Assembly (NCBI GenBank): GCA_002189035.1
Contig: NEEC01000004.1
Coordinates: forward strand, 2,356,001 to 2,420,000
Origin: Utricularia gibba
Lineage: Eukaryota > Plantae > Magnoliophyta
Direction of reading: 5' to 3'
DNA length: 64,000 bases
Shown here: positions 8,148 through 59,151 of the stretch, one piece after another
Layout: the number at the start of each line of letters is the position of its first letter
How positions within the stretch are numbered: the stretch's first letter is position 1
Notes under the pieces: generated by a model
Databases searched by the model: none
What the model saw: the letters and a program-made list of their open reading frames with translations, nothing else
What the model was told of the DNA's origin: nothing
Position numbers and translations under genes: made by a program

Positions 8148-11100
8148 CCTAGATCATCTTATAGTTAGGAATATCATTTTATAAGATAAATAACATTAGG
8201 TATATCTTATCATATTAGGCTTTACCCAAAAAAAATCTACTTATATATTCACATCTCAATGTTTTGGTCTATCTTTAAGTTATATTTTCTAAGTTAGATG
8301 TTTTATCCCTTTCCCATTGCGGATCTATCATAATTCGTTAAAAAAAAGATACCCAATCATATACAACTTTTGGAACCTAAGCTAGACTACACACATCTCC
8401 CTTTTTACTAGAAGCACCACACAAAATATTAACTAATGATGTTAAAATAAATCAAATTAACTTCATAAAATGAAAGTAAAATGACAAGCAAAAATAAAAC
8501 TTTCAAATCTTGAAAATGTAAATAAGTCAAGTTCTACTTTCATAATACTATTCCTATTTAAAAGCAATTTCATCTGAAATCAGTCTTTTGATCTTTCACC
8601 TGCAATAAAGTTTATTCTACTTGTTCTTCCTTCTCGTTCGTCTCCTTTCCCTCTCTGATATATTGTCCCCGTAAAAATCATCTCTTTTCTTTTTATTTTT
8701 TAAATGTTTTGAGGAGTACATAGAAATAATTTCTTTCTTTTTCCCCCATCCATGATAATGGTGTATACTATATTTTCTTTTTCACTTCATCTTTATGTTG
8801 CTTTTTACTTGTCCCATCACAAAATATTTCTTCGATTCTCTTTTGTGTTGCTGTGTTTCTTTCTAAGAATAATTTTTCTTCTTACTTTATCCATTCATTT
8901 TGGAAAAATTAACCATTATGCCCCTGCTTCATGTTGCACGGCACCCATTTGGGATATAGAGGTTAACGTGATAAGTCAACAAACTTACAACTAAGATTTA
9001 TATAAATCAACATAAAACCTAAAGAGATATTAAATACGTAGTTCACTTTTGGACATAGAAATTAAAATATTCTTAAAATTACTAAAACATTAAAATTTAT
9101 AAAAAAAAAACTTCATTTCACTGAAAAATACATTAACTTATTATATTAAAAACACCTAGAAAACATCAATTCACAACAGCCTAAGCCAAAAATACAGCTG
9201 CATCCACCATATTGGCCATTTTTCAAGGTAATAATATTCTACTTGTGCAATAAATTTCTTTTTTTTTTCATTAGCCAATTTTAATCATTATGATTAAGGA
9301 ATGTATTGCATGTATATATGACACTCACATCCTTACGTGTATACCATTTGATAAGATAAGACCATGAATAGGAAAATACAAGAAGTCTTCACAAAATATT
9401 ATGTTTGTGATTTTGATTATAATATTACTTGTTGCATAGTAAGTGCATAAGAATATCAACATACTTTTACGTATATTTGGAGAAGCTGAACAAGATAGAA
9501 AATGGAATTTTCCAATGCCGCCAATTCGTATACCCATTTTAAAATATTTTATGATAATGTGAGTTACATGAATACTTATTATTATTTTACATAAAATATT
9601 ACCCAATTGAGTTCAGATATCCAAACAGACAGAATTTCAAACTCCATATAGAAGCATAGTTTACTAGCAGTTATCACAACGCCAATGAGCTTTGCAATCA
9701 TCATCATTTAAAACGTCATTTGATGGTTGAAAGAATCATAGAATGTGGAAAAACAAGTTCAACTGAATAACTTCTATTAGAATAAATATTGCTAATCGAC
9801 ACAAGTCGCACTTGTGACAACCACGATGGTTATACATAATTTCATAAATTTAGTGAATCAGATAAATCCCACTTTTCTAGAAATAAATATATAGTTTTAA
9901 ATAAATTCATAAACATAGAATTAAAAAAATTCATGTAATATCAAAATTATTTAAATTTATTAATTAAACACCCTATAATATATAATACTAGCTTTAAACC
10001 ATATAATTCTATCAAACAGACATTACTTTAGTGTGAATGAACTAATCGATAATAGACATATGGATGGTGTTAGGGATCTAATCCATGAAACCATTGTCAA
10101 ATCTAGAGTTGCTCGGCATGCACGACTAGTCATTGTGATACTTACAATTTACAAACATTGAAAACATAAAAAAAATAGATATTTTGTGAACTAAACGGAA
10201 TTGTTTTACTTCTTACCCGAGTAGTCCGACAGACCACCAGCAAGCCAGACAACAGAACGTCTCTAAAGCCGCTTCCATTTGAGAAATTTGGAAGTCATCA
10301 GAAAACAGAGGATACACGACCAGCCAAGGGATGAGGTCATTGGAACGGTCTTCACAGCAATCCCTGAAACAGAAGGTGTGGCTGCTGCGATGGGTCCCTC
10401 CGGTTAAGAAAAAATAAAATGAAGAAAACGTGTAGCATGTAGCCAACCAACCTTTTAATGTTGGTGTGTTATTCCTCTATATAAATAAAGGGATACTAGT
10501 TTCTTTTTTGTATCTCCAACGGTTTCTCTGAGGTTTGAGTAGAATTCCGATTAAGAATTTGAGTGATTTTTAAGAGTAGAATAGAAAGAGAAGAATGATA
10601 GTAATGTTTTTTTATTAATTATATTTATTATCCAATAAAAAATTTTAAGAAGAAAATAAAAAATGATAAATTTCAATAATTTACTAAAGTACATCTATTC
10701 GTATTCAATATGATAAATATTTAATTTTTTTGAATTAAATATAGATGTAATCTTACTTTTGAGTTGAAACATATCAAATTGGGTATCTATTTTTTGATTA
10801 ATTTATTATTTTGATAACACTTAGGTAGAACACTCATAATGGGTTGTGTGTTGTCAAGGTGTTGGTGATGGGATGAAGAATATGAGATTCTGGTCAAGTG
10901 AAGCTGATTGCCCAGCAGTGGCAGAAGATGAAGCATACATATCCCACGGGTGTACGACACAAGGCCTCCTTACACCACCAGATCCTCCTGTGCTCTGCAT
11001 ATCGAGTGGCTGCTCCTCTCCTACTCAGTTTGCCTTGCACGTGACCAAGTCATTTGTATTGCAACAATGCAACTCCAGAACGATGCAAATAAATTATTAT

Positions 11101-12082
11101 TCTAAACTCGACTCGCATATGTTTCTTACATCACAGAATCGCGAAAGGCTTGGATTGTGTCAATACAATCCATCCATCTCCTGGGAAACGTTTCAAAGGT
11201 AGCGAGATGAGTGTCTCCGCATGGGGTGCCTTTCCATATCCTTTACTTTAGTGCTAGTGGCAGCAGTGATGAGCGAAGCCACATCAATTTCTATTTTGGT
11301 GGTCCTAAAACCCTAATCTTATGATGTTGACCTCGGCTCACAATTATGTGCCCCTCACGCGCCGACTGCGTCATAAAATACAATGCACGTAGACTTCAAC
11401 TCTTCTCAAAAATCCAAAAAGACAAACGAAACGAAAATATGTGCTTATCCTGAAATTCTACATTTATTTTATTATCAAGCCCTTTTTATTTTATGCAAGT
11501 GGATAAAATACATTAAATCAATTTTTGTTTCTAAAATATCATCTACATTTTTAACATTTATTAAATTTTCTTTTATGAGAATTAAATCAATTCTATCATA
11601 ATTATAAAAGACTAGGTTTTCTACTAGAATTAATATTAAGATTTGAATTATATTCATTCTTTTTTTGAATTATTCTAATATTTTAATTATTTATAATATT
11701 TATGATATAAATGATTTATAAAATATTATTATTAATAAATATAAATATATCATTTTTATTTAATTACACTCTAAACATAAATCATTTTTATATTAATTAT
11801 TCCTAAATTGCATTTGCAAATATATATCAATTTTTATTTCATTAGAATATTCAATTTTATTTACATCACTCCTGAAGTGATTTTTCAAACGTAAATGTGA
11901 TTTTTCTGAATATAATAATTAAACTTACAGAGTAAATCCATGGATGAAAATGCGGAAAATTATTGTGTTTATGGGTCCCGTGATCATCTGCTGGATAACT
12001 ATTATTTATTATTTTATGTATTTATTGTGCTGAGGTATTTTTCCCAGTCCCGTATGCCCTCCCACCCAGTCAGGCTCCCATC

Positions 12083-12089
12083 TATAAAT
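12083..12089 (+). promoter_or_regulatory. TATA box of the bZIP gene
   Basis: tcTATAAATccc is followed by a pyrimidine-rich leader, about 230 bp upstream of the ATG at 12311. Confidence 0.6.
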
Positions 12090-12190
12090 CCCACTGTTTT
12101 CGGGTCCACGCCGCCCATCCAGATTCTTCTTTTTCTTCCATTTCCTTCCTTTCGTTTTTGTCGACAGATTGAGCTCCAGACCTTGAAGCG

Positions 12191-12310
12191 CAGACTCTTT
12201 TGATTCTCAGAGAAGTCGAAGGCGATCGCCTTCGAATCCATCCATTGTCCTCAGTTTCTTTTTCATCTGCGTGGAAGATTTTATTGGAAACGAATCATAA
12301 CTGCCCCCGC
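12191..12310 (+). other. Vestigial (start-less and stop-less) conserved-peptide uORF of S1 bZIPs
   Basis: The frame reads QTLLILREVEGDRLRIHPLSSVSFSSAWKILLETNHNCPR directly into the bZIP ATG. It is compared with the recalled SIRT uORF consensus MSPIILSEI...RRRTHLVQSFSVVFLYW. No ATG occurs between the TATA box and 12311. Confidence 0.5.
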
Positions 12311-12763
12311 ATGTCTCATTTCTCCCCCGAGTATCGCACGCTGCTGACATCCTCCACTTCCGGTTCGGAGGGGGAGAAGAGAAAGAGGAAGCGGATGGAA
12401 TCGAATCGGGAATCGGCGAGGCGGTCGAGGCAACGGAAGCAGAAGCATCTGGACGATCTCACGGCGCAGGTGGCGGAGCTGCGAAGAAAGAAGGCCGAGA
12501 TTACGATTTGCGTATCATCGGTAACGCAACGATTCATCGACGTCGAGACGGAAAACTCTGCCTTGAAGGCTCGGATGGCGGAGCTGACGGAGGCCCTTCA
12601 CTATCTCAACGGAATACTCAATTTCCTCGACCCTCATGCGGCGTGCGGCGGCGCGTGCAGTATTGAGACGGCGGAGTTTCAACTTCACCATGCCGATCCA
12701 GGCGATGGCATCATCGGTTCCGTCGGCGAGCTCCCCACCACGGCGAGATTTTTCAACATCTAG
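12311..12763 (+). CDS. bZIP11-like: S1-group basic leucine zipper transcription factor (bZIP11/2/44-like), 150 aa, intronless
   Basis: Contains SSTSGSE...KRKRKRMESNRESARRSRQRKQKHLDDLTAQV and a long zipper ...ETENSALKARMAELTEALHYLNGILNFL. The first ATG is at 12311; the ORF-track start at 12200 is TTG. Confidence 0.9.
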   Translation: MSHFSPEYRTLLTSSTSGSEGEKRKRKRMESNRESARRSRQRKQKHLDDLTAQVAELRRKKAEITICVSSVTQRFIDVETENSALKARMAELTEALHYLNGILNFLDPHAACGGACSIETAEFQLHHADPGDGIIGSVGELPTTARFFNI

Positions 12764-13007
12764 ACGTTTTCAGTTAGACGGGACGAACCCAAAAAATTGT
12801 ATTATATTTCACGTCATGTTGAAATGGCCGTAGTTTCTTCTTTGCGTGTAAGTTTTATTTAGCGTGTAATTAATTGATTTAATCATTTTTCTGGATAGAA
12901 TATGTGAACAGAGTTTGGTGTACAATTGCTTCAAGTGCCATTGCAGCCAGCAGGCATTGCCAAAGAACAAAACTCTGGTATTACCGGCACAAATATATGC
13001 AACATTC

Positions 13008-15076
13008 TCAGACCGCAGCTACAGATTCTGCAACATCATGTTTCCAGAACCTGTTGATGAGAAGCAAGGAATCGGCTTCAACAGCGATGCCGTCTTGGTT
13101 CCGATGCCACCCGAAGTAAGCATGCGTCCTGTTCTTGATATCGAACACCCCGTGTCCGAAGCTCGCTTCCCGGTATGCAGAGTATGCCGGTTGCGGGTGT
13201 GTCATGCTGCCAAAGATGAATGCAGATGAGAAGAGACTGAGGTCGCTGTGGTGAATGTGGAGAGTGAGCAACACTTACTCTGTCACCAACCCTTCTGAGT
13301 TCCCCCGTCTCCGATCGTGATGTACACCGGAGCAGACTCATCGGTAACAGGGGAACAAAGCCCATTCACTACATTGTATGCTATGTTGGAAATTCGTTCC
13401 TGCTCAATGCCCAAGTCTTTTAACTTGGAAGTTCATGTGCCTCTTCTGTTAATTGATTCACGGTGATACTTACAGAGCGTTCGTAGGCGTGAACATGGCC
13501 GGCAAATACGACGTCCACCTTGTACTTTACGAACCATGGCTCGTAAAGCACGCGCATACTTTCTCCTTCCATGTAGTGATGCACATAGCTGCTATAAAAA
13601 GGGACGTGTAGTAGTACAACTAGCCATGGTGTCTCTGACCTGTTCACTTTTGGTAGTTCGTTTGCAAGCCACTTGTATTGAGGGGTGTACGTTCCTGCAG
13701 CACAAAACCAATCAAATACATGAAACGCCATGTCTGCTGCCACAAGAAGTAGAAGAAATGGAGGAAAGCAAGTCACCGTAAGCTGAGTAACAAGAGAGGA
13801 CAATGATGTGGGCTGAAGCTCGCTTGATTGAGTACCAGAGTGGTGATGTGCTTTCAGATGCTTTGTACGGTGTAAAAAATCGGTTCAAAAAAGGTTTGAA
13901 GGGCACGTTTTCTCCCTACAAATTTGACGAGTTCCACTCCATCAAACTCAGAGGAAACTGGAAGAGCAGCATCCTTCTGGGAAAAAATACTTACAATTGC
14001 AGGAACAGTATCGATCTCATGATTTCCTACAGTCCAGATCCATGGCTGGTAAGCTGCACTTCTCTCAACGAATCTCCCCCATGAATCCCACCTCATGTTA
14101 TCATGGTTTGGATATCGGTCTGCATACGACAGATCCCCAACGAATAAAACCGTTTGCCCTTTCAGAGGATTCATCTCATAATGAGTTAGTGTCCTACTGG
14201 AGTCCCCAGTTTGTCCAAGATCACCTATTCATGATGCCAATCAGATCAACAGAAACGTTTACATTTTGGGAAGCGAGCCTAAACAGTTACCAACGTAGAA
14301 TACAACTAAAATTCAATGAAGTCATCTAACTAAGCATTGATAACACCAATTCTTCCTCTTGTGAGTAACTATTTTATCAAACTCGAAAAAAGGAAAAAAA
14401 AAAAAAAACTTCCATTCATGAAGTCTACACACCTATGAGCCCAAAGGTATAAGGAACGTCAGGGCCTGGTTTAGGAGGGGTTGTGAACCAGAACTGTCTT
14501 GCGGCACTCCCTGTCCCTATCTCATAGTAGTATTTTGTATCAAACTGCAGTTTTGACCGGATTGTTTAGTAATGTTTTACGTTAATGAACAGAGAAAGTA
14601 AAACAGAACACCATACAAGCAAATCCTCGATGGTGCAATGATGAATGAAACCAGACGTATAAGTGAAAAATTTGTATCTCCTGATAACCGCATACGCAGT
14701 TTGCTTAATCTCGCTGTTATCCTCCCAATAAACCACCGAATTGGAGCCTCGTGCATCCGGCGTAATCCAAGATATAATCACACCTCTACCCTCATAATCC
14801 CCTTGTGTAATGTGAACCTTCAAACCAACAAATCAAGCCCAGAAATCGAATATATTGAGATGAGGCAACAGAAATTAGAAAAAAGACTTCGCTTAGTACC
14901 TGCTGCGGAGCATTGTAACCCGGAGGGATACGAAACACATCGCTGTCGAAAGGCATATCTTCGGTGACGTCATTGATTCTCAGGTAGTTACTGGTGAATC
15001 CTGCTTGACATGACCGAATTAGCATCAAGCCCAGAAGCAGATACCCAAATCCATGCTGAACGCCATGGAACCCCAT
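13008..15076 (-). CDS. PAP: Purple acid phosphatase (PAP10/12/26 group), 8 exons: 15076-14900, 14817-14617, 14544-14433, 14224-13995, 13915-13777, 13694-13474, 13399-13279, 13206-13008. About 466 aa once an apparent 1-nt deletion in exon 7 is corrected.
   Basis: Signal-peptide-like N-terminus and all five metal-ligand motifs (GDLG, GDLSY, GNHE, VLLH, GHVH). All seven introns are GT-AG (72-208 bp) with consistent phases, except that exon 7 is 121 nt rather than 122 nt. Confidence 0.92.
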
Positions 15077-30615: not shown

Positions 30616-32437
30616 GGTTGTGTTTGATAGCTAATATAAGCAGGGATATATTAAGTACTAGAATATAAAATTTCTGTTTAGTAATCAATATAAGTTTTCC
30701 CAATATATATTTTCACTTACTATAAACATATATTTCTCCTATGTGCTGCCCCTCGTTAAATTTATCGTGATATCATGGATAATTTATCCCACTTCACGAA
30801 ATATATGAAATTATCACATTGGCCTAAATTGTTTAATAATGTACACTTCAATTTAAGAACAAAATTGAATCGAAACCCTAACCCTTCCCCTTGAATTGGA
30901 GATTGCTGAATTCGTCATACTAAAACTCCAATTTCAGTTCTTGGGTTCGAACTTATTGACCTACTGATGATTCTTGCTTGTCCAAGTGGAAAAAGACATG
31001 TTTGATGATAGGAATAGTTCTTCGCATTAGTACATACATCTCTCGATTCTCGACCTTCAATTGGGTATGAGGTCAATTTTTAATTTGTTACATTCAAAAT
31101 CTGTATTCGGTTGCTTTTTTCTCTTTTTGTGTAATTGTGTCCATCACATCATTTTTAGATTTTAAGGCTTATGATTTTTGATGTTTGAGGTTTTGTGAAT
31201 CTGATTCAAAGTCATAGATTGTATTTTCATTTTATATCATGCTGTCTATATTTTCACTAGAATTTTTTGTAACTTCAAAATAGATTCAATCGAGGAGCAG
31301 AGCGATTTGTTGGAGTTAGCTTATATATTGAATATGAATTTGACTATTAATCACATTATTGTGATATTCATTCTATTGAATGCAGTCTCAAGTTATAACT
31401 AGCAAAAGTTATTATTCTTATACAATGGAGATATCCAAAAAAGAAGAACATCTTCATAATCATGTGGCTAATGTTCACAGCACATTGCTAGAAGAACTCC
31501 GGATGAATCACAATTTATTTGATCGTTTGTGTGTCCTTCATGACTATGTAGGGCTACCTATTTCAAGGTATGTTACTATTACTAAGAAGGTGTGCATTCT
31601 TCTTGGTATTAGAGCTCATCATAAGAAAAAAAGGGTGCAAAAATATTCGTTCAAAAGATCCACATGGATATTTAGATATCACTTCAAGACAATCCTTACT
31701 CTAAGAACTCCAAACGTAACGAACTCATATAATTAATTAATCACAATATAACTCATTGGCATACTTACCAATTCATCCCATAGCTTATCAAGGGCATCTA
31801 TCATTTGCATGGTGCTATTCCAATTGGCTCCAGATTGTGAGAGTATATCCATAATCATATAGTATTCCTTCTTCGAAATCTTAATCTTCAACGAGATATG
31901 AGAGATTGATGTCAACGTAGAATCAGGTTTACGTTTCTTCAATGCCTTCTCTAGTGCAACTTAGAACCCATTTCGAAAGCCATTTTTGCTCTTCCAAGCA
32001 CTATCAATTATTTTTTTGAACACCACAACCAGAAGGTGTTTCTCTTCAGCATTCCAGTTCTGTTTCGATTTGGACCGAACATTGTTATTATCGGCAATAG
32101 AACTTGCCATGGATACTTACAAGAGAGAATCGATTTGACAGATCACAATTAGAAGCGGGCACAATCAAAGCAGCACAATATACTACGAAGAACACTAGAT
32201 TAAATTGAGACAAAATGTTAAAGGATAGATAAGTAATCTCAAATTCATTAACTCAACTTATCCTGAACTCTACTACCTACAAAACATCGAATAAATTTGT
32301 ATCAAGACATAAAAAATATGTTACCACAATAAATACATTAATATCTTGATATAAATTTATATCAAGATAAATATACCTATATAACTTTAGTTGGCGACCA
32401 AAGAAACGCTTAAGGACTGTTTTTATCAGACACCACA
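30616..32437. mobile_element. PIF/Harbinger deletion derivative: transposase N-terminus (+, 31380-31736) convergent with a Myb/SANT gene remnant (-, about 31733-32110)
   Basis: LEELRMNHNLFDRLC...RYVTITKKVCILLGIRAHHKKKRVQKYSFKRS matches the Harbinger transposase N-terminus. The minus strand gives MASSIADNNNVRSKSKQNWNAEEK...WKSKNGFRNG...HISLKIKISKKEYYMIMDILSQSGANWN (Myb/SANT-like, frameshifted). Imperfect TIRs ggttgtgtttgata / tatcagacaccaca (11/14) are flanked by TTA and TAA. Confidence 0.75.
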
Positions 32438-32527
32438 TAATGGGGTTCTCTTCGTTGAGAGGTGTCAATCAGAAATCATAATTTTTGGGCATGTCTTCAC
32501 TCAAGCACTTGAATACATGCATGCCCC

Positions 32528-33246: not shown

Positions 33247-34908
33247 TCACCGGAGTTGTATCCACATCCCTTCGCTGGGAATGCGCTCATGGACCAGGTA
33301 CAGGATGTAGAACCCGGAGGGCGCGTAACTCCGCGACCCCGGAGTTTTGATCCGCATCTGAAACGTGAATTTCCCGACTTGCGCCACATCTAACGGATTC
33401 ACAACCACTAGCCTTTGGTTCATGGAGAACGAGTGGGTGTTGAACGGCGGCGCGTAGAAGGCAACCGTCAGTCCTTTCGTGTTCAGTTTCTGAGGTGCGA
33501 TCGTGAATTGGATGTTGAGAAGCTGATTGTGGCCGGCTGTGAGATGGTAGGGCGGTGGAGGGGCAACGATGATGGGGCGGAGATCGGCGAATTCAGGGGA
33601 TAAATACGGCGGGGAGAAGGATTGGAGGGACAAGTCGGTCGGGAAATTGACTCCCGTGAATCGGTAAAGTAGGTGGGGGTTGCTTCCGCTGACCAGCACC
33701 CTGCCGTCGCGGAGGAGAACGGCGGTGGAGTGGTACATGCGCGGCGTGGAGCTTCCGGTCTGCACTTCGAATCTTGAACCGGCCGGGTTCGTGGGTTTGT
33801 AGATAACAGGATTGAGAACCGGGTCCCTGCCTAGTTCCCAACCGGCGGTACCTTTGCTCCCGCCGTTGATGATCAAAACGTCGCCGTTTGGGAGCAAAAC
33901 CATATCCCCCATTGTTCTGCGTAACGGCATTTTCTCCATACTCCACTGCGGGTTCTTGACGTTAACTCCTATTCGGCCGCAAGTATCAAGCGCATCCACA
34001 AATTGCCCCTTCTTGGCCATGAGGAAAGATCCCTTGGGTGCGCCGCCGCAAACCAGAACCTCGATTCCAGCGGCGTCCCCGTCCAATATCGGAAGAACGA
34101 CTGCCGAGCCTGTACTCGGGTAAGTCCTGGGATCGCCGCCGGGGATTTCTGGGTAATTTCTCACTACTCTGGATGTCTTGTAATCGAACAGAATAGCACG
34201 ATTATTGGCGAAGATGAAGAGATTCCCATCATGATTGAGAAACACGAACGGGTAAAGATTGTTCTCGATTTTCGGATCGTTCGTCTCCTTCAGAAATGGG
34301 AAGTAGAAAGAACCTTCACGGGGAGATGTTTTCGGAAAGAATTCGTAATTGAACTGCGCCCGCCCTCCGATTATGATCTCCCTACCGTCGGGTAAAATAT
34401 GATTCGTCGCGTACCACCGTTTCTGAGCTAAGCCGCCCTGGATTTCTTCCCATTCGCAAGAATTGTCATCGCAGGGGTTGTAGATTCTAACGGTATGATC
34501 ACCGTCATTGTAGCCGCCCGTTTGCATAAGCCTCCCGTCCGGCGAGACGGCTCCAGAGGAGCACCATACGTCGGTAAGAACCATCAATGGGCGGACGGCG
34601 TTCTTGGCGACGTCGTACTCAACGGAGTGAGCGGTGCAATCGACTTTCAACGCGGTATCCCTTGCATCATGGCGGCACTTACCACCGGGAAGTGATATGT
34701 TGGATTTGCCGAAGTCGGTGCGGTCGAAAATGACGACGCGGTCGTTGTGGAGGAGCTGCATGTGCATGGCTGAGATTCCAATGTTGGTGAGTAGGAGCTT
34801 CCATGTAGCAGTAGGGGCGGCGCGTGTGAGAACGCTCAAGACGTCGATGAGTAGAAGGAAAAGAATTAAGCCCCGGAGGGAGAAGGGTGCGGCGGTTGCC
34901 GGAGACAT
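33247..34908 (-). CDS. GLOX: Glyoxal/aldehyde oxidase (GLOX, galactose-oxidase-like copper radical oxidase), 553 aa, intronless, secreted
   Basis: Signal peptide, ISAMHMQLL, WCSSG (Cys of the Cys-Tyr cofactor), RWYATN, RMYHS and FNTHSFSMNQR copper-ligand motifs. ATG at 34908; the ORF-track start at 34938 is GTG. Confidence 0.95.
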   Translation of the reverse strand: MSPATAAPFSLRGLILFLLLIDVLSVLTRAAPTATWKLLLTNIGISAMHMQLLHNDRVVIFDRTDFGKSNISLPGGKCRHDARDTALKVDCTAHSVEYDVAKNAVRPLMVLTDVWCSSGAVSPDGRLMQTGGYNDGDHTVRIYNPCDDNSCEWEEIQGGLAQKRWYATNHILPDGREIIIGGRAQFNYEFFPKTSPREGSFYFPFLKETNDPKIENNLYPFVFLNHDGNLFIFANNRAILFDYKTSRVVRNYPEIPGGDPRTYPSTGSAVVLPILDGDAAGIEVLVCGGAPKGSFLMAKKGQFVDALDTCGRIGVNVKNPQWSMEKMPLRRTMGDMVLLPNGDVLIINGGSKGTAGWELGRDPVLNPVIYKPTNPAGSRFEVQTGSSTPRMYHSTAVLLRDGRVLVSGSNPHLLYRFTGVNFPTDLSLQSFSPPYLSPEFADLRPIIVAPPPPYHLTAGHNQLLNIQFTIAPQKLNTKGLTVAFYAPPFNTHSFSMNQRLVVVNPLDVAQVGKFTFQMRIKTPGSRSYAPSGFYILYLVHERIPSEGMWIQLR

Positions 34909-35088
34909 GATTTTGTAAGGCCGTGACGTGCCACCCACCCTGAGTCGGGCTTCTTAAGTAGCTGTTGCCAGAGAACGCCATATTAGATAGAGTCTCGCAC
35001 GCAAGATAGAGCTAATTAAATTCATCCCCCCTTTTTTTCTTTTATAAAGAGATTTTTTTGGTTAATTCAACCGGTAGGTAATATCACC

Positions 35089-43381: not shown

Positions 43382-44605
43382 TGATAGCACACAAATTTTC
43401 CTATTTTTAAGAAATATGAAAATTAAAACTTTTTAATTATATTTTAGGTGTTTATTTTATGGTTTAAGTATTTTTACAAAAGTTTAGGAAAAGTAGGAAT
43501 TTGTATGCATATGGGCTAAACCCTTTGATTTAGCCTATTCTATATTATTAACCCAATTTGAAGTCGAGTAGAAAATTCCAAAAATAAGGGAAAGGTGCAA
43601 GGATTTCGTGCAAGCATAAAAAGAGAGGATAATGAGTACACTTCCATCATAGCAGACAGCAAGCCAGGTGTAGGAACAACAATGTTGTCAGAGAATTGTA
43701 CTTGCTTAGGGAAATGGAGAAAGAAAGTTTTTTTTTTTTTTTTTTGAGGAGGAAGAGAAAAAAAGAGGAGTGCTTCGACAGAAAAGATTTTTACACACGA
43801 AAAAGCTTCCAAGATCACCAAACCAGAAAGAAGAAGAAGGAGATTAAAGGGGAGAAGACTCTCTCAAAGTGTCTTTGATATCTTCACTATTTTATCTTAA
43901 TGATATCATGTTTCATCTTCCACACGCGAGTAGCTAAACTTAGGGGATGGCTTAAGGTGTAAAATGGTGATATGGGACTAGGGTTCATAACACAATCTAT
44001 TATTTCTTAGATTTTGTTTCTATCATTCTTTGGGTAAACTTAAGGGGGAGTGAATGAATAGCTTTGCAACTCAAATGTTTGATTTAGAGGTAGACCAACA
44101 AATCAAGACAGGAATAATAGGTATTAGTCCTTGGTAGAACCAGTAGAGTCAAGTATATCTAGTTTATATATTTCGCACATGGATAGACCTAAGTGTGGGA
44201 TATGTGATGAAATCAGAGGCTATATTAATCAAAAACATGAGAAATAACCTGCGTAAACTTAGGTTGTTTAGAGTTGTAAGTATAGAAACATTGTAAATTA
44301 AATTAGGAAACTTAGCCCCACATCTTAGTATTACTTTGTACTTGAAACATATATTTGTTACTTTCAGCATTGAAACTTAATCTTATTTATTGAATTCACA
44401 TGATGCTGCTAGTTTGAGCTTAGACTAAGAACAATGTTTCTTTCGAATTTTGCGTCACATAAAATACATTGCAAGTACCAGTTTCTCTTGATCGATCATG
44501 AATTCCACTTTATATATTGGGTTTGTTTTGTATCTTGTAAGAATTATGGCTTATGATACGAAGATTTCATCTTTTGCAATGATTTAAAGAAATTTTCATT
44601 CATCA
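43382..44605 (+). mobile_element. Solo LTR, family A, TSD CCTAT, inserted in the Copia integrase
   Basis: TGatagcac...ttcatCA, with CCTAT at 43377-43381 and 44606-44610. Removing it restores the minus-strand integrase motif VYFMNR|IPT. Confidence 0.88.
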
Positions 44606-58230: not shown

Positions 58231-59151
58231 TTACCTGATAGTGATGTAGCGGTTTGTGCCATGTTTCGCCCAGTGCTCTTTAAGATCAACAGGGTTGGAT
58301 AGATCATGCCCATTTTCTGCCAGCCTGCTGAGAAGCTTACCGAATGCGCTTCCGCTCATCTTACGGCCGCCAACCCGAGCATGTCTCTTGTTCGGTAAAG
58401 CAGGGAGTGGATACATGGATAGATTCATGGTGCAGCAAGATGATTGCCAGCCTCCGCTTCCCCATTTATAGCATGGTCTCACAACACCGGTGCAGGAACA
58501 GACAGGGACAGGCATTGTGGTCTCATCAAACGCAACCTGGTGCTGCTCCTGCCAGTCTTGCTTGCAAGGAGCAATTAGACGATTGCTGCTGTCATGTCCC
58601 TCCTGTTTAATCACCCTCTTCGATGCCTTGGATGCCTTCTTTGAAGCACTGGCAATATGCTTCATCTCCCTTGGATGTTTCCCACGATGGGGGTTCATGG
58701 ATGGTGGCTCGATGGAAAGGGAGGAGGAGTCGTATTGGGGCTCAACGATACGAGGTTGAATGTGCTTTACTCCATGCCGGCACTGAAGAGTGGCGATGGC
58801 ATTGTCCCTTTCCAAAATAGCGGTGTTACGTTCAGCTATAGCTGCATCTCTGTGCAGAATAGCCATGTCTCTTTCAGCCAAGGCAGTTTTCTTCTCAGAA
58901 ATGGCTAAGTTTCTCTCCTGGATAGCAGCATCTCTTTCGGCCATGATCCCCGTTATATGTATCATTGACGGATGTTGCTGCTGCATTAACCACTGCGAAC
59001 AACACATCAGACTCGAAGTTTATGTGTTCACCCAAATGCCAAGGCAAGCCACAGACAAATAAACTGAAAGAGTTTGATGTACTTGACACTGAGCCTGAGG
59101 AGGAGGTTTATGCCCTCCATTTTCACAGTGCCCAGTCCCATTCTCATCCAT
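58231..59151 (-). CDS. BPC6-like: BARLEY B RECOMBINANT/BASIC PENTACYSTEINE class II (BPC4/5/6-like) GAGA-binding factor, 276 aa; coding exons 59151-59083 and 58992-58231
   Basis: [15 protein letters not shown]...Q|[10 protein letters not shown] with a 90-bp GT-AG intron. Alanine-zipper [13 protein letters not shown] repeats and C-terminal CSCTG...[15 protein letters not shown]...[13 protein letters not shown] with five Cys. Confidence 0.93.

Follow-up and report, generated by a model that had tools for sequence, protein, structure and literature searches.

Few translational switches in seed plants are as highly conserved as the sucrose-control uORF, whose deletion or editing has been used to obtain a higher sugar content in crops. 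The SIRT uORF has been described as a characterizing feature of S1 transcripts, and SIRT requires Leu-35, Tyr-39, and a fixed position of the stop codon (Peviani et al. 2016, PMC4960570). In Arabidopsis, all 12 retained duplicate pairs studied by Hayden and Jorgensen kept conserved uORFs in both copies. Removal or editing of the uORF is reported to raise sugar content in the case of tobacco tbz17 (PMC3310857) and strawberry FvebZIPs1.1 (PMC7470447). Like these alleles, the locus described here would yield an S1 bZIP transcript that carries no working sucrose-control uORF; unlike them, it is a natural locus rather than a laboratory allele, and its protein, which in the laboratory alleles is otherwise unchanged, has also diverged.

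Natural S1 members without the uORF are already in the literature. Among S1-classified bZIPs, a 2024 survey (PMC11120861) reports that 5 of the 10 from Populus tomentosa lack it, as do 4 of the 7 tomato and 3 of the 5 maize members. The survey rests on annotated UTRs and ORFfinder and reports no uORFs in apple and potato, a zero that probably reflects missing UTR annotation. Whereas those cases depend on annotation, absence at the present locus was established on genomic DNA, over 12 kb of upstream sequence, by profile searches with a positive control. We therefore regard it as a better-documented further case.

The gene lies in a window of 64 kb, by which we mean the whole stretch of DNA that was analyzed. 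It resembles the bZIP11/ATB2-type S1 genes of Arabidopsis (bZIP1, 2, 11, 44, and 53) in being a small intronless bZIP gene whose product has a basic region of the form M-x-SNRESARRSR-x-RKQKHLDDL, a nine-heptad zipper, and an SGSE N-terminal motif. It differs from them in having no uORF, a predicted leader of only ~195 nt, a Lys in place of the zipper Asn, and no PIMA..EM.DY motif.

An S1-type bZIP gene and its relatives

The bZIP ORF (Table 1) matches the Pfam families bZIP_1 (E 3.7e-10) and bZIP_2 (E 7e-07), and its product has the N-x7-R basic region followed by leucine heptads that marks a bZIP domain. Its size and structure fit the S1 group, whose members are small (~140-200 aa) and intronless, in that it is a single ORF and its homologues are 119-203 aa long. 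The GC content is 55-60% within the ORF, and the flanks are AT-rich (10-30% GC).

Table 1. Positions of the features of the bZIP locus, numbered from the first nucleotide of the window
Feature	Position	Strand	Details and basis
87-codon ORF (a second in-frame ATG at 12054 gives 49 codons)	11940-12203	+	ORF list; spans the TATA box
TATA box, TATAAAT	12083-12089	+	C-rich stretch just before; read from the sequence
Predicted 5' leader, ~195 nt, without AUG and without the sucrose-control uORF	12113-12310	+	Transcription start predicted from where the TATA box lies
Pyrimidine-rich (CT) tract early in the leader	12124-12162	+	Best local alignments to relatives' leaders
Stop-free stretch in the bZIP frame (proposed fossil)	12173-12310	+	In-frame stop TGA at 12170
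bZIP CDS, S1-type, intronless	12311-12763	+	150 codons plus TAG; ORF list and Pfam
Basic (DNA-binding) region, residues 24-50	12380-12460	+	Every conserved column equals the consensus of 120 homologues
Leucine zipper, nine heptads (L50, L57, I64, V71, V78, L85, L92, L99, L106)	12458-12628	+	

We searched a collection of 5.8 billion sequences for homologues and took the best 120 proteins, all of which are small bZIPs and most of which come from Lamiales and other asterids. Those named by their source are bZIP44-like, bZIP11-like, or OBF1 (ocs-element-binding factor 1), and the rest carry generic names. The closest proteins, both among these 120 and in a HMMER scan of representatives, are those of Genlisea aurea, with 60-61% identity; when the scan was run exhaustively over 1.84 billion representatives, nothing closer than Genlisea (61%) was found, and querying public assemblies for an identical protein gave no match. 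The two Genlisea genes, M569_16628 and M569_12984 (L001 and L002), also have a similar TATA/pyrimidine layout. Unlike the window gene, however, both retain the 41-codon uORF intact, its end lying 30 nt upstream of the main ATG in one gene and 118 nt in the other, and their branches are 2.5-10x shorter than that of the window protein.

In a quick tree of 76 rows, the protein and the Genlisea S1 pair are sister groups (SH-aLRT 86), and the same grouping appears in a more careful tree of 34 rows (UFboot 94, SH-aLRT 74). It lies inside the eudicot S1 set in a tree that is rooted on a Typha bZIP53-like protein and has no named non-S1 S-group outgroup. As the protein is short, the backbone is poorly resolved, with AU p values of 0.2-0.3 for the Lamiales groupings, and the AU test does not decide between Lamiales monophyly with and without the window protein. 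The assignment to S1 made in the first-pass annotation holds at this low resolution, through the names of the best 120 homologues and the sister relationship to the Genlisea S1 pair.

The bZIP gene is linked to a GLOX gene 21 kb away in the window. In Penstemon the two share a chromosome at a distance of 220 kb, and the Penstemon homologue in the GLOX neighborhood carries the uORF. Nearby locus tags or shared contigs suggest the same linkage in Erythranthe, Castilleja, Rehmannia, Phlomoides, Andrographis, Salvia, and Sesamum. Within ±10 kb, the bZIP gene alone is common to the window and Penstemon. The linkage gives moderate support to the bZIP gene being a positional orthologue of the bZIP44-like gene of Lamiales. 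The window GLOX gene itself (33247-34938 or, on a narrower delimitation, 33250-34908, minus strand) is intronless and encodes an aldehyde oxidase GLOX/glyoxal-oxidase of 553-563 aa, and its homologues carry the Pfam domains Glyoxal_oxid_N and GO-like_E_set. Its best matches are from Lamiales, with 68% identity, which points to the genome of an isolated, fast-evolving Lamiales lineage, probably Lentibulariaceae-like given the affinity to Genlisea.

The sucrose-control uORF in relatives and in the window

We examined seven loci of relatives, namely, the two Genlisea genes (L001 and L002), three Logan contigs (L003, L004, and L007), an Erythranthe locus (L005), and a Penstemon locus (L006/L008), and found an intact 41-codon sucrose-control uORF in all seven, with 30-118 nt between its end and the main ATG. 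The encoded peptides are of the type M-x-x-V-L-SEILRSGFMINSSLRRRTHLVQSFSVVFLYWFYVFS. One of them, at 499-621 of L007 (Logan contig SRR30940501_285263), reads FLHWFY where FLYWFY is usual, a Tyr-to-His change in the conserved core, and is otherwise intact.

We built a profile HMM of the uORF from six of the relatives and used the seventh as a positive control, which scored E 3e-30. Run with all filters off against every stop-to-stop fragment in the six frames of the 64-kb window, the profile returned nothing significant, the best match having an E value of 0.05 (32413-32475, minus strand), and the frame that leads into the bZIP was absent from the 2,571 fragments listed at E<1000. Searches of the region 11400-12320 with a DNA profile of the uORF (nhmmer) and with the uORF peptides (tblastn) were likewise without a match. 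Together, these negative results indicate that the uORF is missing from the leader and likewise from every upstream exon that splicing could join to it.

Three stretches elsewhere in the window, all on the minus strand, were considered as candidates and set aside as chance matches. The best HMM match (FLIDTSQRREPHYVVS, 32413-32475) lies in AT-rich sequence, with no bZIP downstream. A second stretch, at 10157-10261 (DVLLSGLL...FFYVFN), had an E value of 0.03 in tblastn but 2.5 with the HMM and also has no bZIP downstream. The third, “LYWFY” at 44134-44150, is a match at chance level that adjoins no bZIP.

Since all seven relatives have the uORF and the window gene is nested among uORF-bearing genes, its absence represents a secondary loss, and loss of the sucrose-control uORF from the bZIP locus is well supported. 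This agrees with the earlier description of the gene as an S1-type bZIP without the uORF, and the possibility that a longer leader might contain an intact copy was not borne out, as profile searches with a positive control found none over 12 kb of upstream sequence. On balance, we think that the locus is an S1-clade bZIP gene of a fast-evolving Lamiales genome that has secondarily lost its sucrose-control uORF (CPuORF homology group 1), a reading drawn from genomic sequence.

The leader and the open frame upstream of the bZIP AUG

The sequence and the ORF list confirm the TATA box at 12083 and the bZIP ATG at 12311 and, as had been claimed, there is no ATG from one to the other (12083-12310). 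Whereas 2.0 ATGs would be expected in a stretch of this length from dinucleotide shuffles, 8.8% of the shuffled sequences are also free of ATG over the 228 nt, so that the depletion is not significant (p 0.088). The context of the bZIP AUG is weak, with C at -3 and T at +4.

The region of the TATA box shares the string TC(C/T)CATCTATAAAT with Genlisea L001, and L002, L005, and L006 likewise have TATAAA with a pyrimidine tract after it. Pyrimidine-rich tracts are common in plant core promoters generally. The distance from the TATA box to the ATG is 228 nt in the window and 251 nt in Genlisea L001. Homology of the promoter and leader to those of relatives is nevertheless weakly supported (z 1.2-3.5). 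The best local alignment, that of the leader with L005, scores 17 against 10.9 ± 1.7 for shuffled sequences (p ~0.01) and falls in the pyrimidine-rich tract, and those with L002 and L006 give p values of ~0.08-0.09. In shuffle tests, the leader showed no similarity to the 60 nt that precede the uORF in relatives (p 0.51) or to the spacer that follows it (p 0.35). A candidate match found by eye, between TTGATTCTCAGAGAA in the window and the CTTGATGCTGCAGAA element of the relatives, a small upstream ATG, was rejected on the same grounds (TTGATTCTCAG against CTTGATGCTGCAG).

The predicted start of the leader follows from the TATA box, and transcription might instead begin upstream of that box or from another promoter. 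In that case, an unrelated uORF of 87 or 49 codons, rather than the sucrose peptide, would damp translation of the bZIP. Six ATGs (12054, 12016, 11971, 11950, 11944, and 11940) do lie in the 145 nt that precede the TATA box, as the nearest ones 5' of the ATG-free stretch, and 108 nt separate the end of the ORF that opens at 11940 from the bZIP ATG. However, the TATA box and the pyrimidine tract are arranged as in the relatives, whose leader begins there, and the sequence upstream of 12020 has a GC content of 10-28%, like the intergenic background. Moreover, the 11940-12203 ORF matches no Pfam family and has no likeness to the sucrose-control peptide by profile HMM or tblastn. We consider a different leader of this kind quite unlikely.

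The first-pass annotation had also proposed that the leader holds a fossil of the uORF, in frame with the bZIP. The translation that it quotes is correct; the frame reads APDLEAQTLLILREVEGDRLRIHPLSSVSFSSAWKILLETNHNCPR upstream of the bZIP Met and does run into the bZIP, being open back to the TGA at 12170, so that initiation at the in-frame TTG at 12200 would add 37 residues. The stretch contains several other near-cognate codons, namely, ATT 12203, ATC 12236, TTG 12245, AAG 12275, ATT 12278, TTG 12284, and ACG 12290. If 12191-12274 were a mutated remnant of the uORF fused to the bZIP, initiation at UUG 12200 could give an N-terminally extended factor. Apart from the open frame, a short DNA match of CGCCTTCGAATCCATC to CGCCGTAGAACCCATC (13 of 16 positions), the latter being the RRRTH codons of Genlisea L001, is consistent with this proposal, and the similar distance from TATA box to ATG in L001 would allow for a colinear but heavily substituted remnant.

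To address this proposal, we confined the comparison to the last 141 nt ahead of the ATG, aligned all three frames with six uORFs, and repeated the alignments with 1,000 dinucleotide shuffles. The best leader peptide had a Smith-Waterman score of 26, whereas the shuffled leaders scored 25.0 ± 3.9 and 40% of them reached 26; another frame of the leader did about as well, with a score of 25. At the DNA level, the score of 10 did not exceed that of the shuffled sequences (10.2 ± 1.4, with 67% of shuffles reaching it). There is no AUG-initiated ORF of ~41 codons at 12191-12274, and where the core SFSVxFLYWFY would be expected, the proposed fossil reads SSVSFSSAWKILLE, with no equivalent of Leu-35 or Tyr-39 and no stop codon. 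Thus, the AUG, both residues, and the fixed stop position are missing, and the residues and stop are those required for SIRT (PMC4960570). The profile HMM and nhmmer searches described above also find nothing here, and the UUG at 12200 stands in a poor context, with C at -3 and A at +4. A remnant fused to the bZIP is therefore very improbable and, as far as the sequence goes, the fact that the leader reads in frame into the bZIP is coincidental rather than a matter of demonstrable ancestry. Of the earlier reading, then, the S1 bZIP that has lost its uORF stands, given the uORF in all seven relatives, and the recognizable fossil does not, its likeness to the uORF being that of shuffled sequence.

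In a simulation of decay by substitutions alone, the uORF was detected in ~90% of cases up to ~0.5 substitutions per site, and detection failed by 0.8-1.0. We infer that the uORF either was deleted or has been free of constraint over a span of no less than ~0.6 neutral substitutions per site and has decayed beyond recognition. Deletion is not required, since the TATA-to-ATG distance is close to that in L001. If the uORF did decay in place, the gene would have long been kept by selection without it.

State of the protein and predicted regulation

To gauge the state of the protein, we used the 61 columns whose conservation across the best 120 homologues is 85% or more. The window protein is changed in 15 of these, compared with a median of 3 for a homologue and 11 for each of the two Genlisea genes. 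The changes cluster in the N-terminus, in the zipper, and in the C-terminal PIMA..EM.DY motif, which is gone; those at zipper specificity positions are N61K, Q63E, T71V, Q88R, R95A, and S98Y relative to the 120 homologues. Position 61, an a-position, is Asn in 97% of the homologues and Lys in 2 of the 120. Together with the loss of the C-terminal motif, the changed zipper, with its Asn61-to-Lys substitution and a basic RRKK e/g surface, suggests that the protein may have altered dimer partners; S1 factors characteristically prefer to heterodimerize with C-group bZIPs. The changed columns could, however, mean that constraint was relaxed and not that a new function arose.

The end branch of the window protein in the 34-row tree is long (1.18, against a median of 0.19). 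Changes unique to the bZIP branch are 3-9x as many as in other Lamiales S1 genes, whereas the corresponding ratio for the neighboring GLOX is 0.8-2.4x, indicating a gene-specific acceleration on top of the lineage effect.

These observations bear on the possibility that the gene is a decaying relic, that is, an S1 duplicate that lost its uORF and is drifting toward a pseudogene with little or no expression, its ORF open by chance. Such decay would fit the gene-specific acceleration (~5x for the bZIP, compared with ~1.6x for the GLOX), the number of conserved columns changed, which include the C-terminal motif and the nearly invariant Asn of the zipper, and the lack of an exact match to the protein in the assemblies and transcript-derived collections searched. 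It is harder to reconcile with an ORF that has stayed intact over 150 codons and kept its high GC content amid AT-rich flanks, and with a basic region in which all conserved columns are retained, even though synonymous divergence is saturated (pairwise dN/dS to relatives of ~0.2, with dS at 1.1-3.9). Moreover, the two Genlisea genes, which keep the uORF, are also changed in 11 of the conserved columns, implying that much of the divergence is lineage-wide. We therefore regard a relic as unlikely. The coding region looks to be under selection but fast-evolving, and we read the gene product as one predicted still to bind DNA through a remodeled dimer interface, the main rival to this reading being relaxed constraint toward loss.

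For the preferred reading, that of an S1 bZIP that has lost its uORF, the layout of the locus suggests the following course of events. Transcription would start ~30 nt after the TATA box and yield an AUG-free leader of ~195 nt, along which scanning ribosomes would reach the bZIP AUG at 12311 directly. Without the stalling peptide, there would be no sucrose-dependent repression of translation by ribosome stalling, and control by sugar could then be only transcriptional or post-translational. It is reasonable to infer that translation from the predicted leader would be insensitive to sucrose. A bolder version would have the lineage dismantling sucrose-controlled translation family-wide in S1, with the uORF-less copy selected and its zipper retuned to make a sugar-independent regulator, which we consider highly doubtful.

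If an S1 bZIP has indeed been kept without its uORF, the switch would be dispensable for at least one paralogue, and the locus would offer a natural allele for asking what an S1 factor does when it is uncoupled from sucrose. Its value is limited in that uORF-less S1 members are already listed in other species and the claim of a fossil fails testing.

The remaining features of the window are minor ones. Exons of a metallophosphoesterase (purple-acid-phosphatase-like, Pfam Metallophos) occupy about 13000-14200 on the minus strand, convergent with the bZIP gene, and their 3' end lies within a few hundred nucleotides of the bZIP stop codon. About 1-2 kb 5' of the bZIP, a GC-richer block (10100-11400, 42-49% GC) stands between very AT-rich stretches; its longest ORF (10846-11202, plus strand) has no Pfam match, and exon remnants or a transposon relic are candidate origins for the block. 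Farther away, an intact ORF at 58231-59007 on the minus strand encodes a 258-aa GAGA-binding factor (BBR/BPC, BASIC PENTACYSTEINE-type; Pfam GAGA_bind, E 1e-92).
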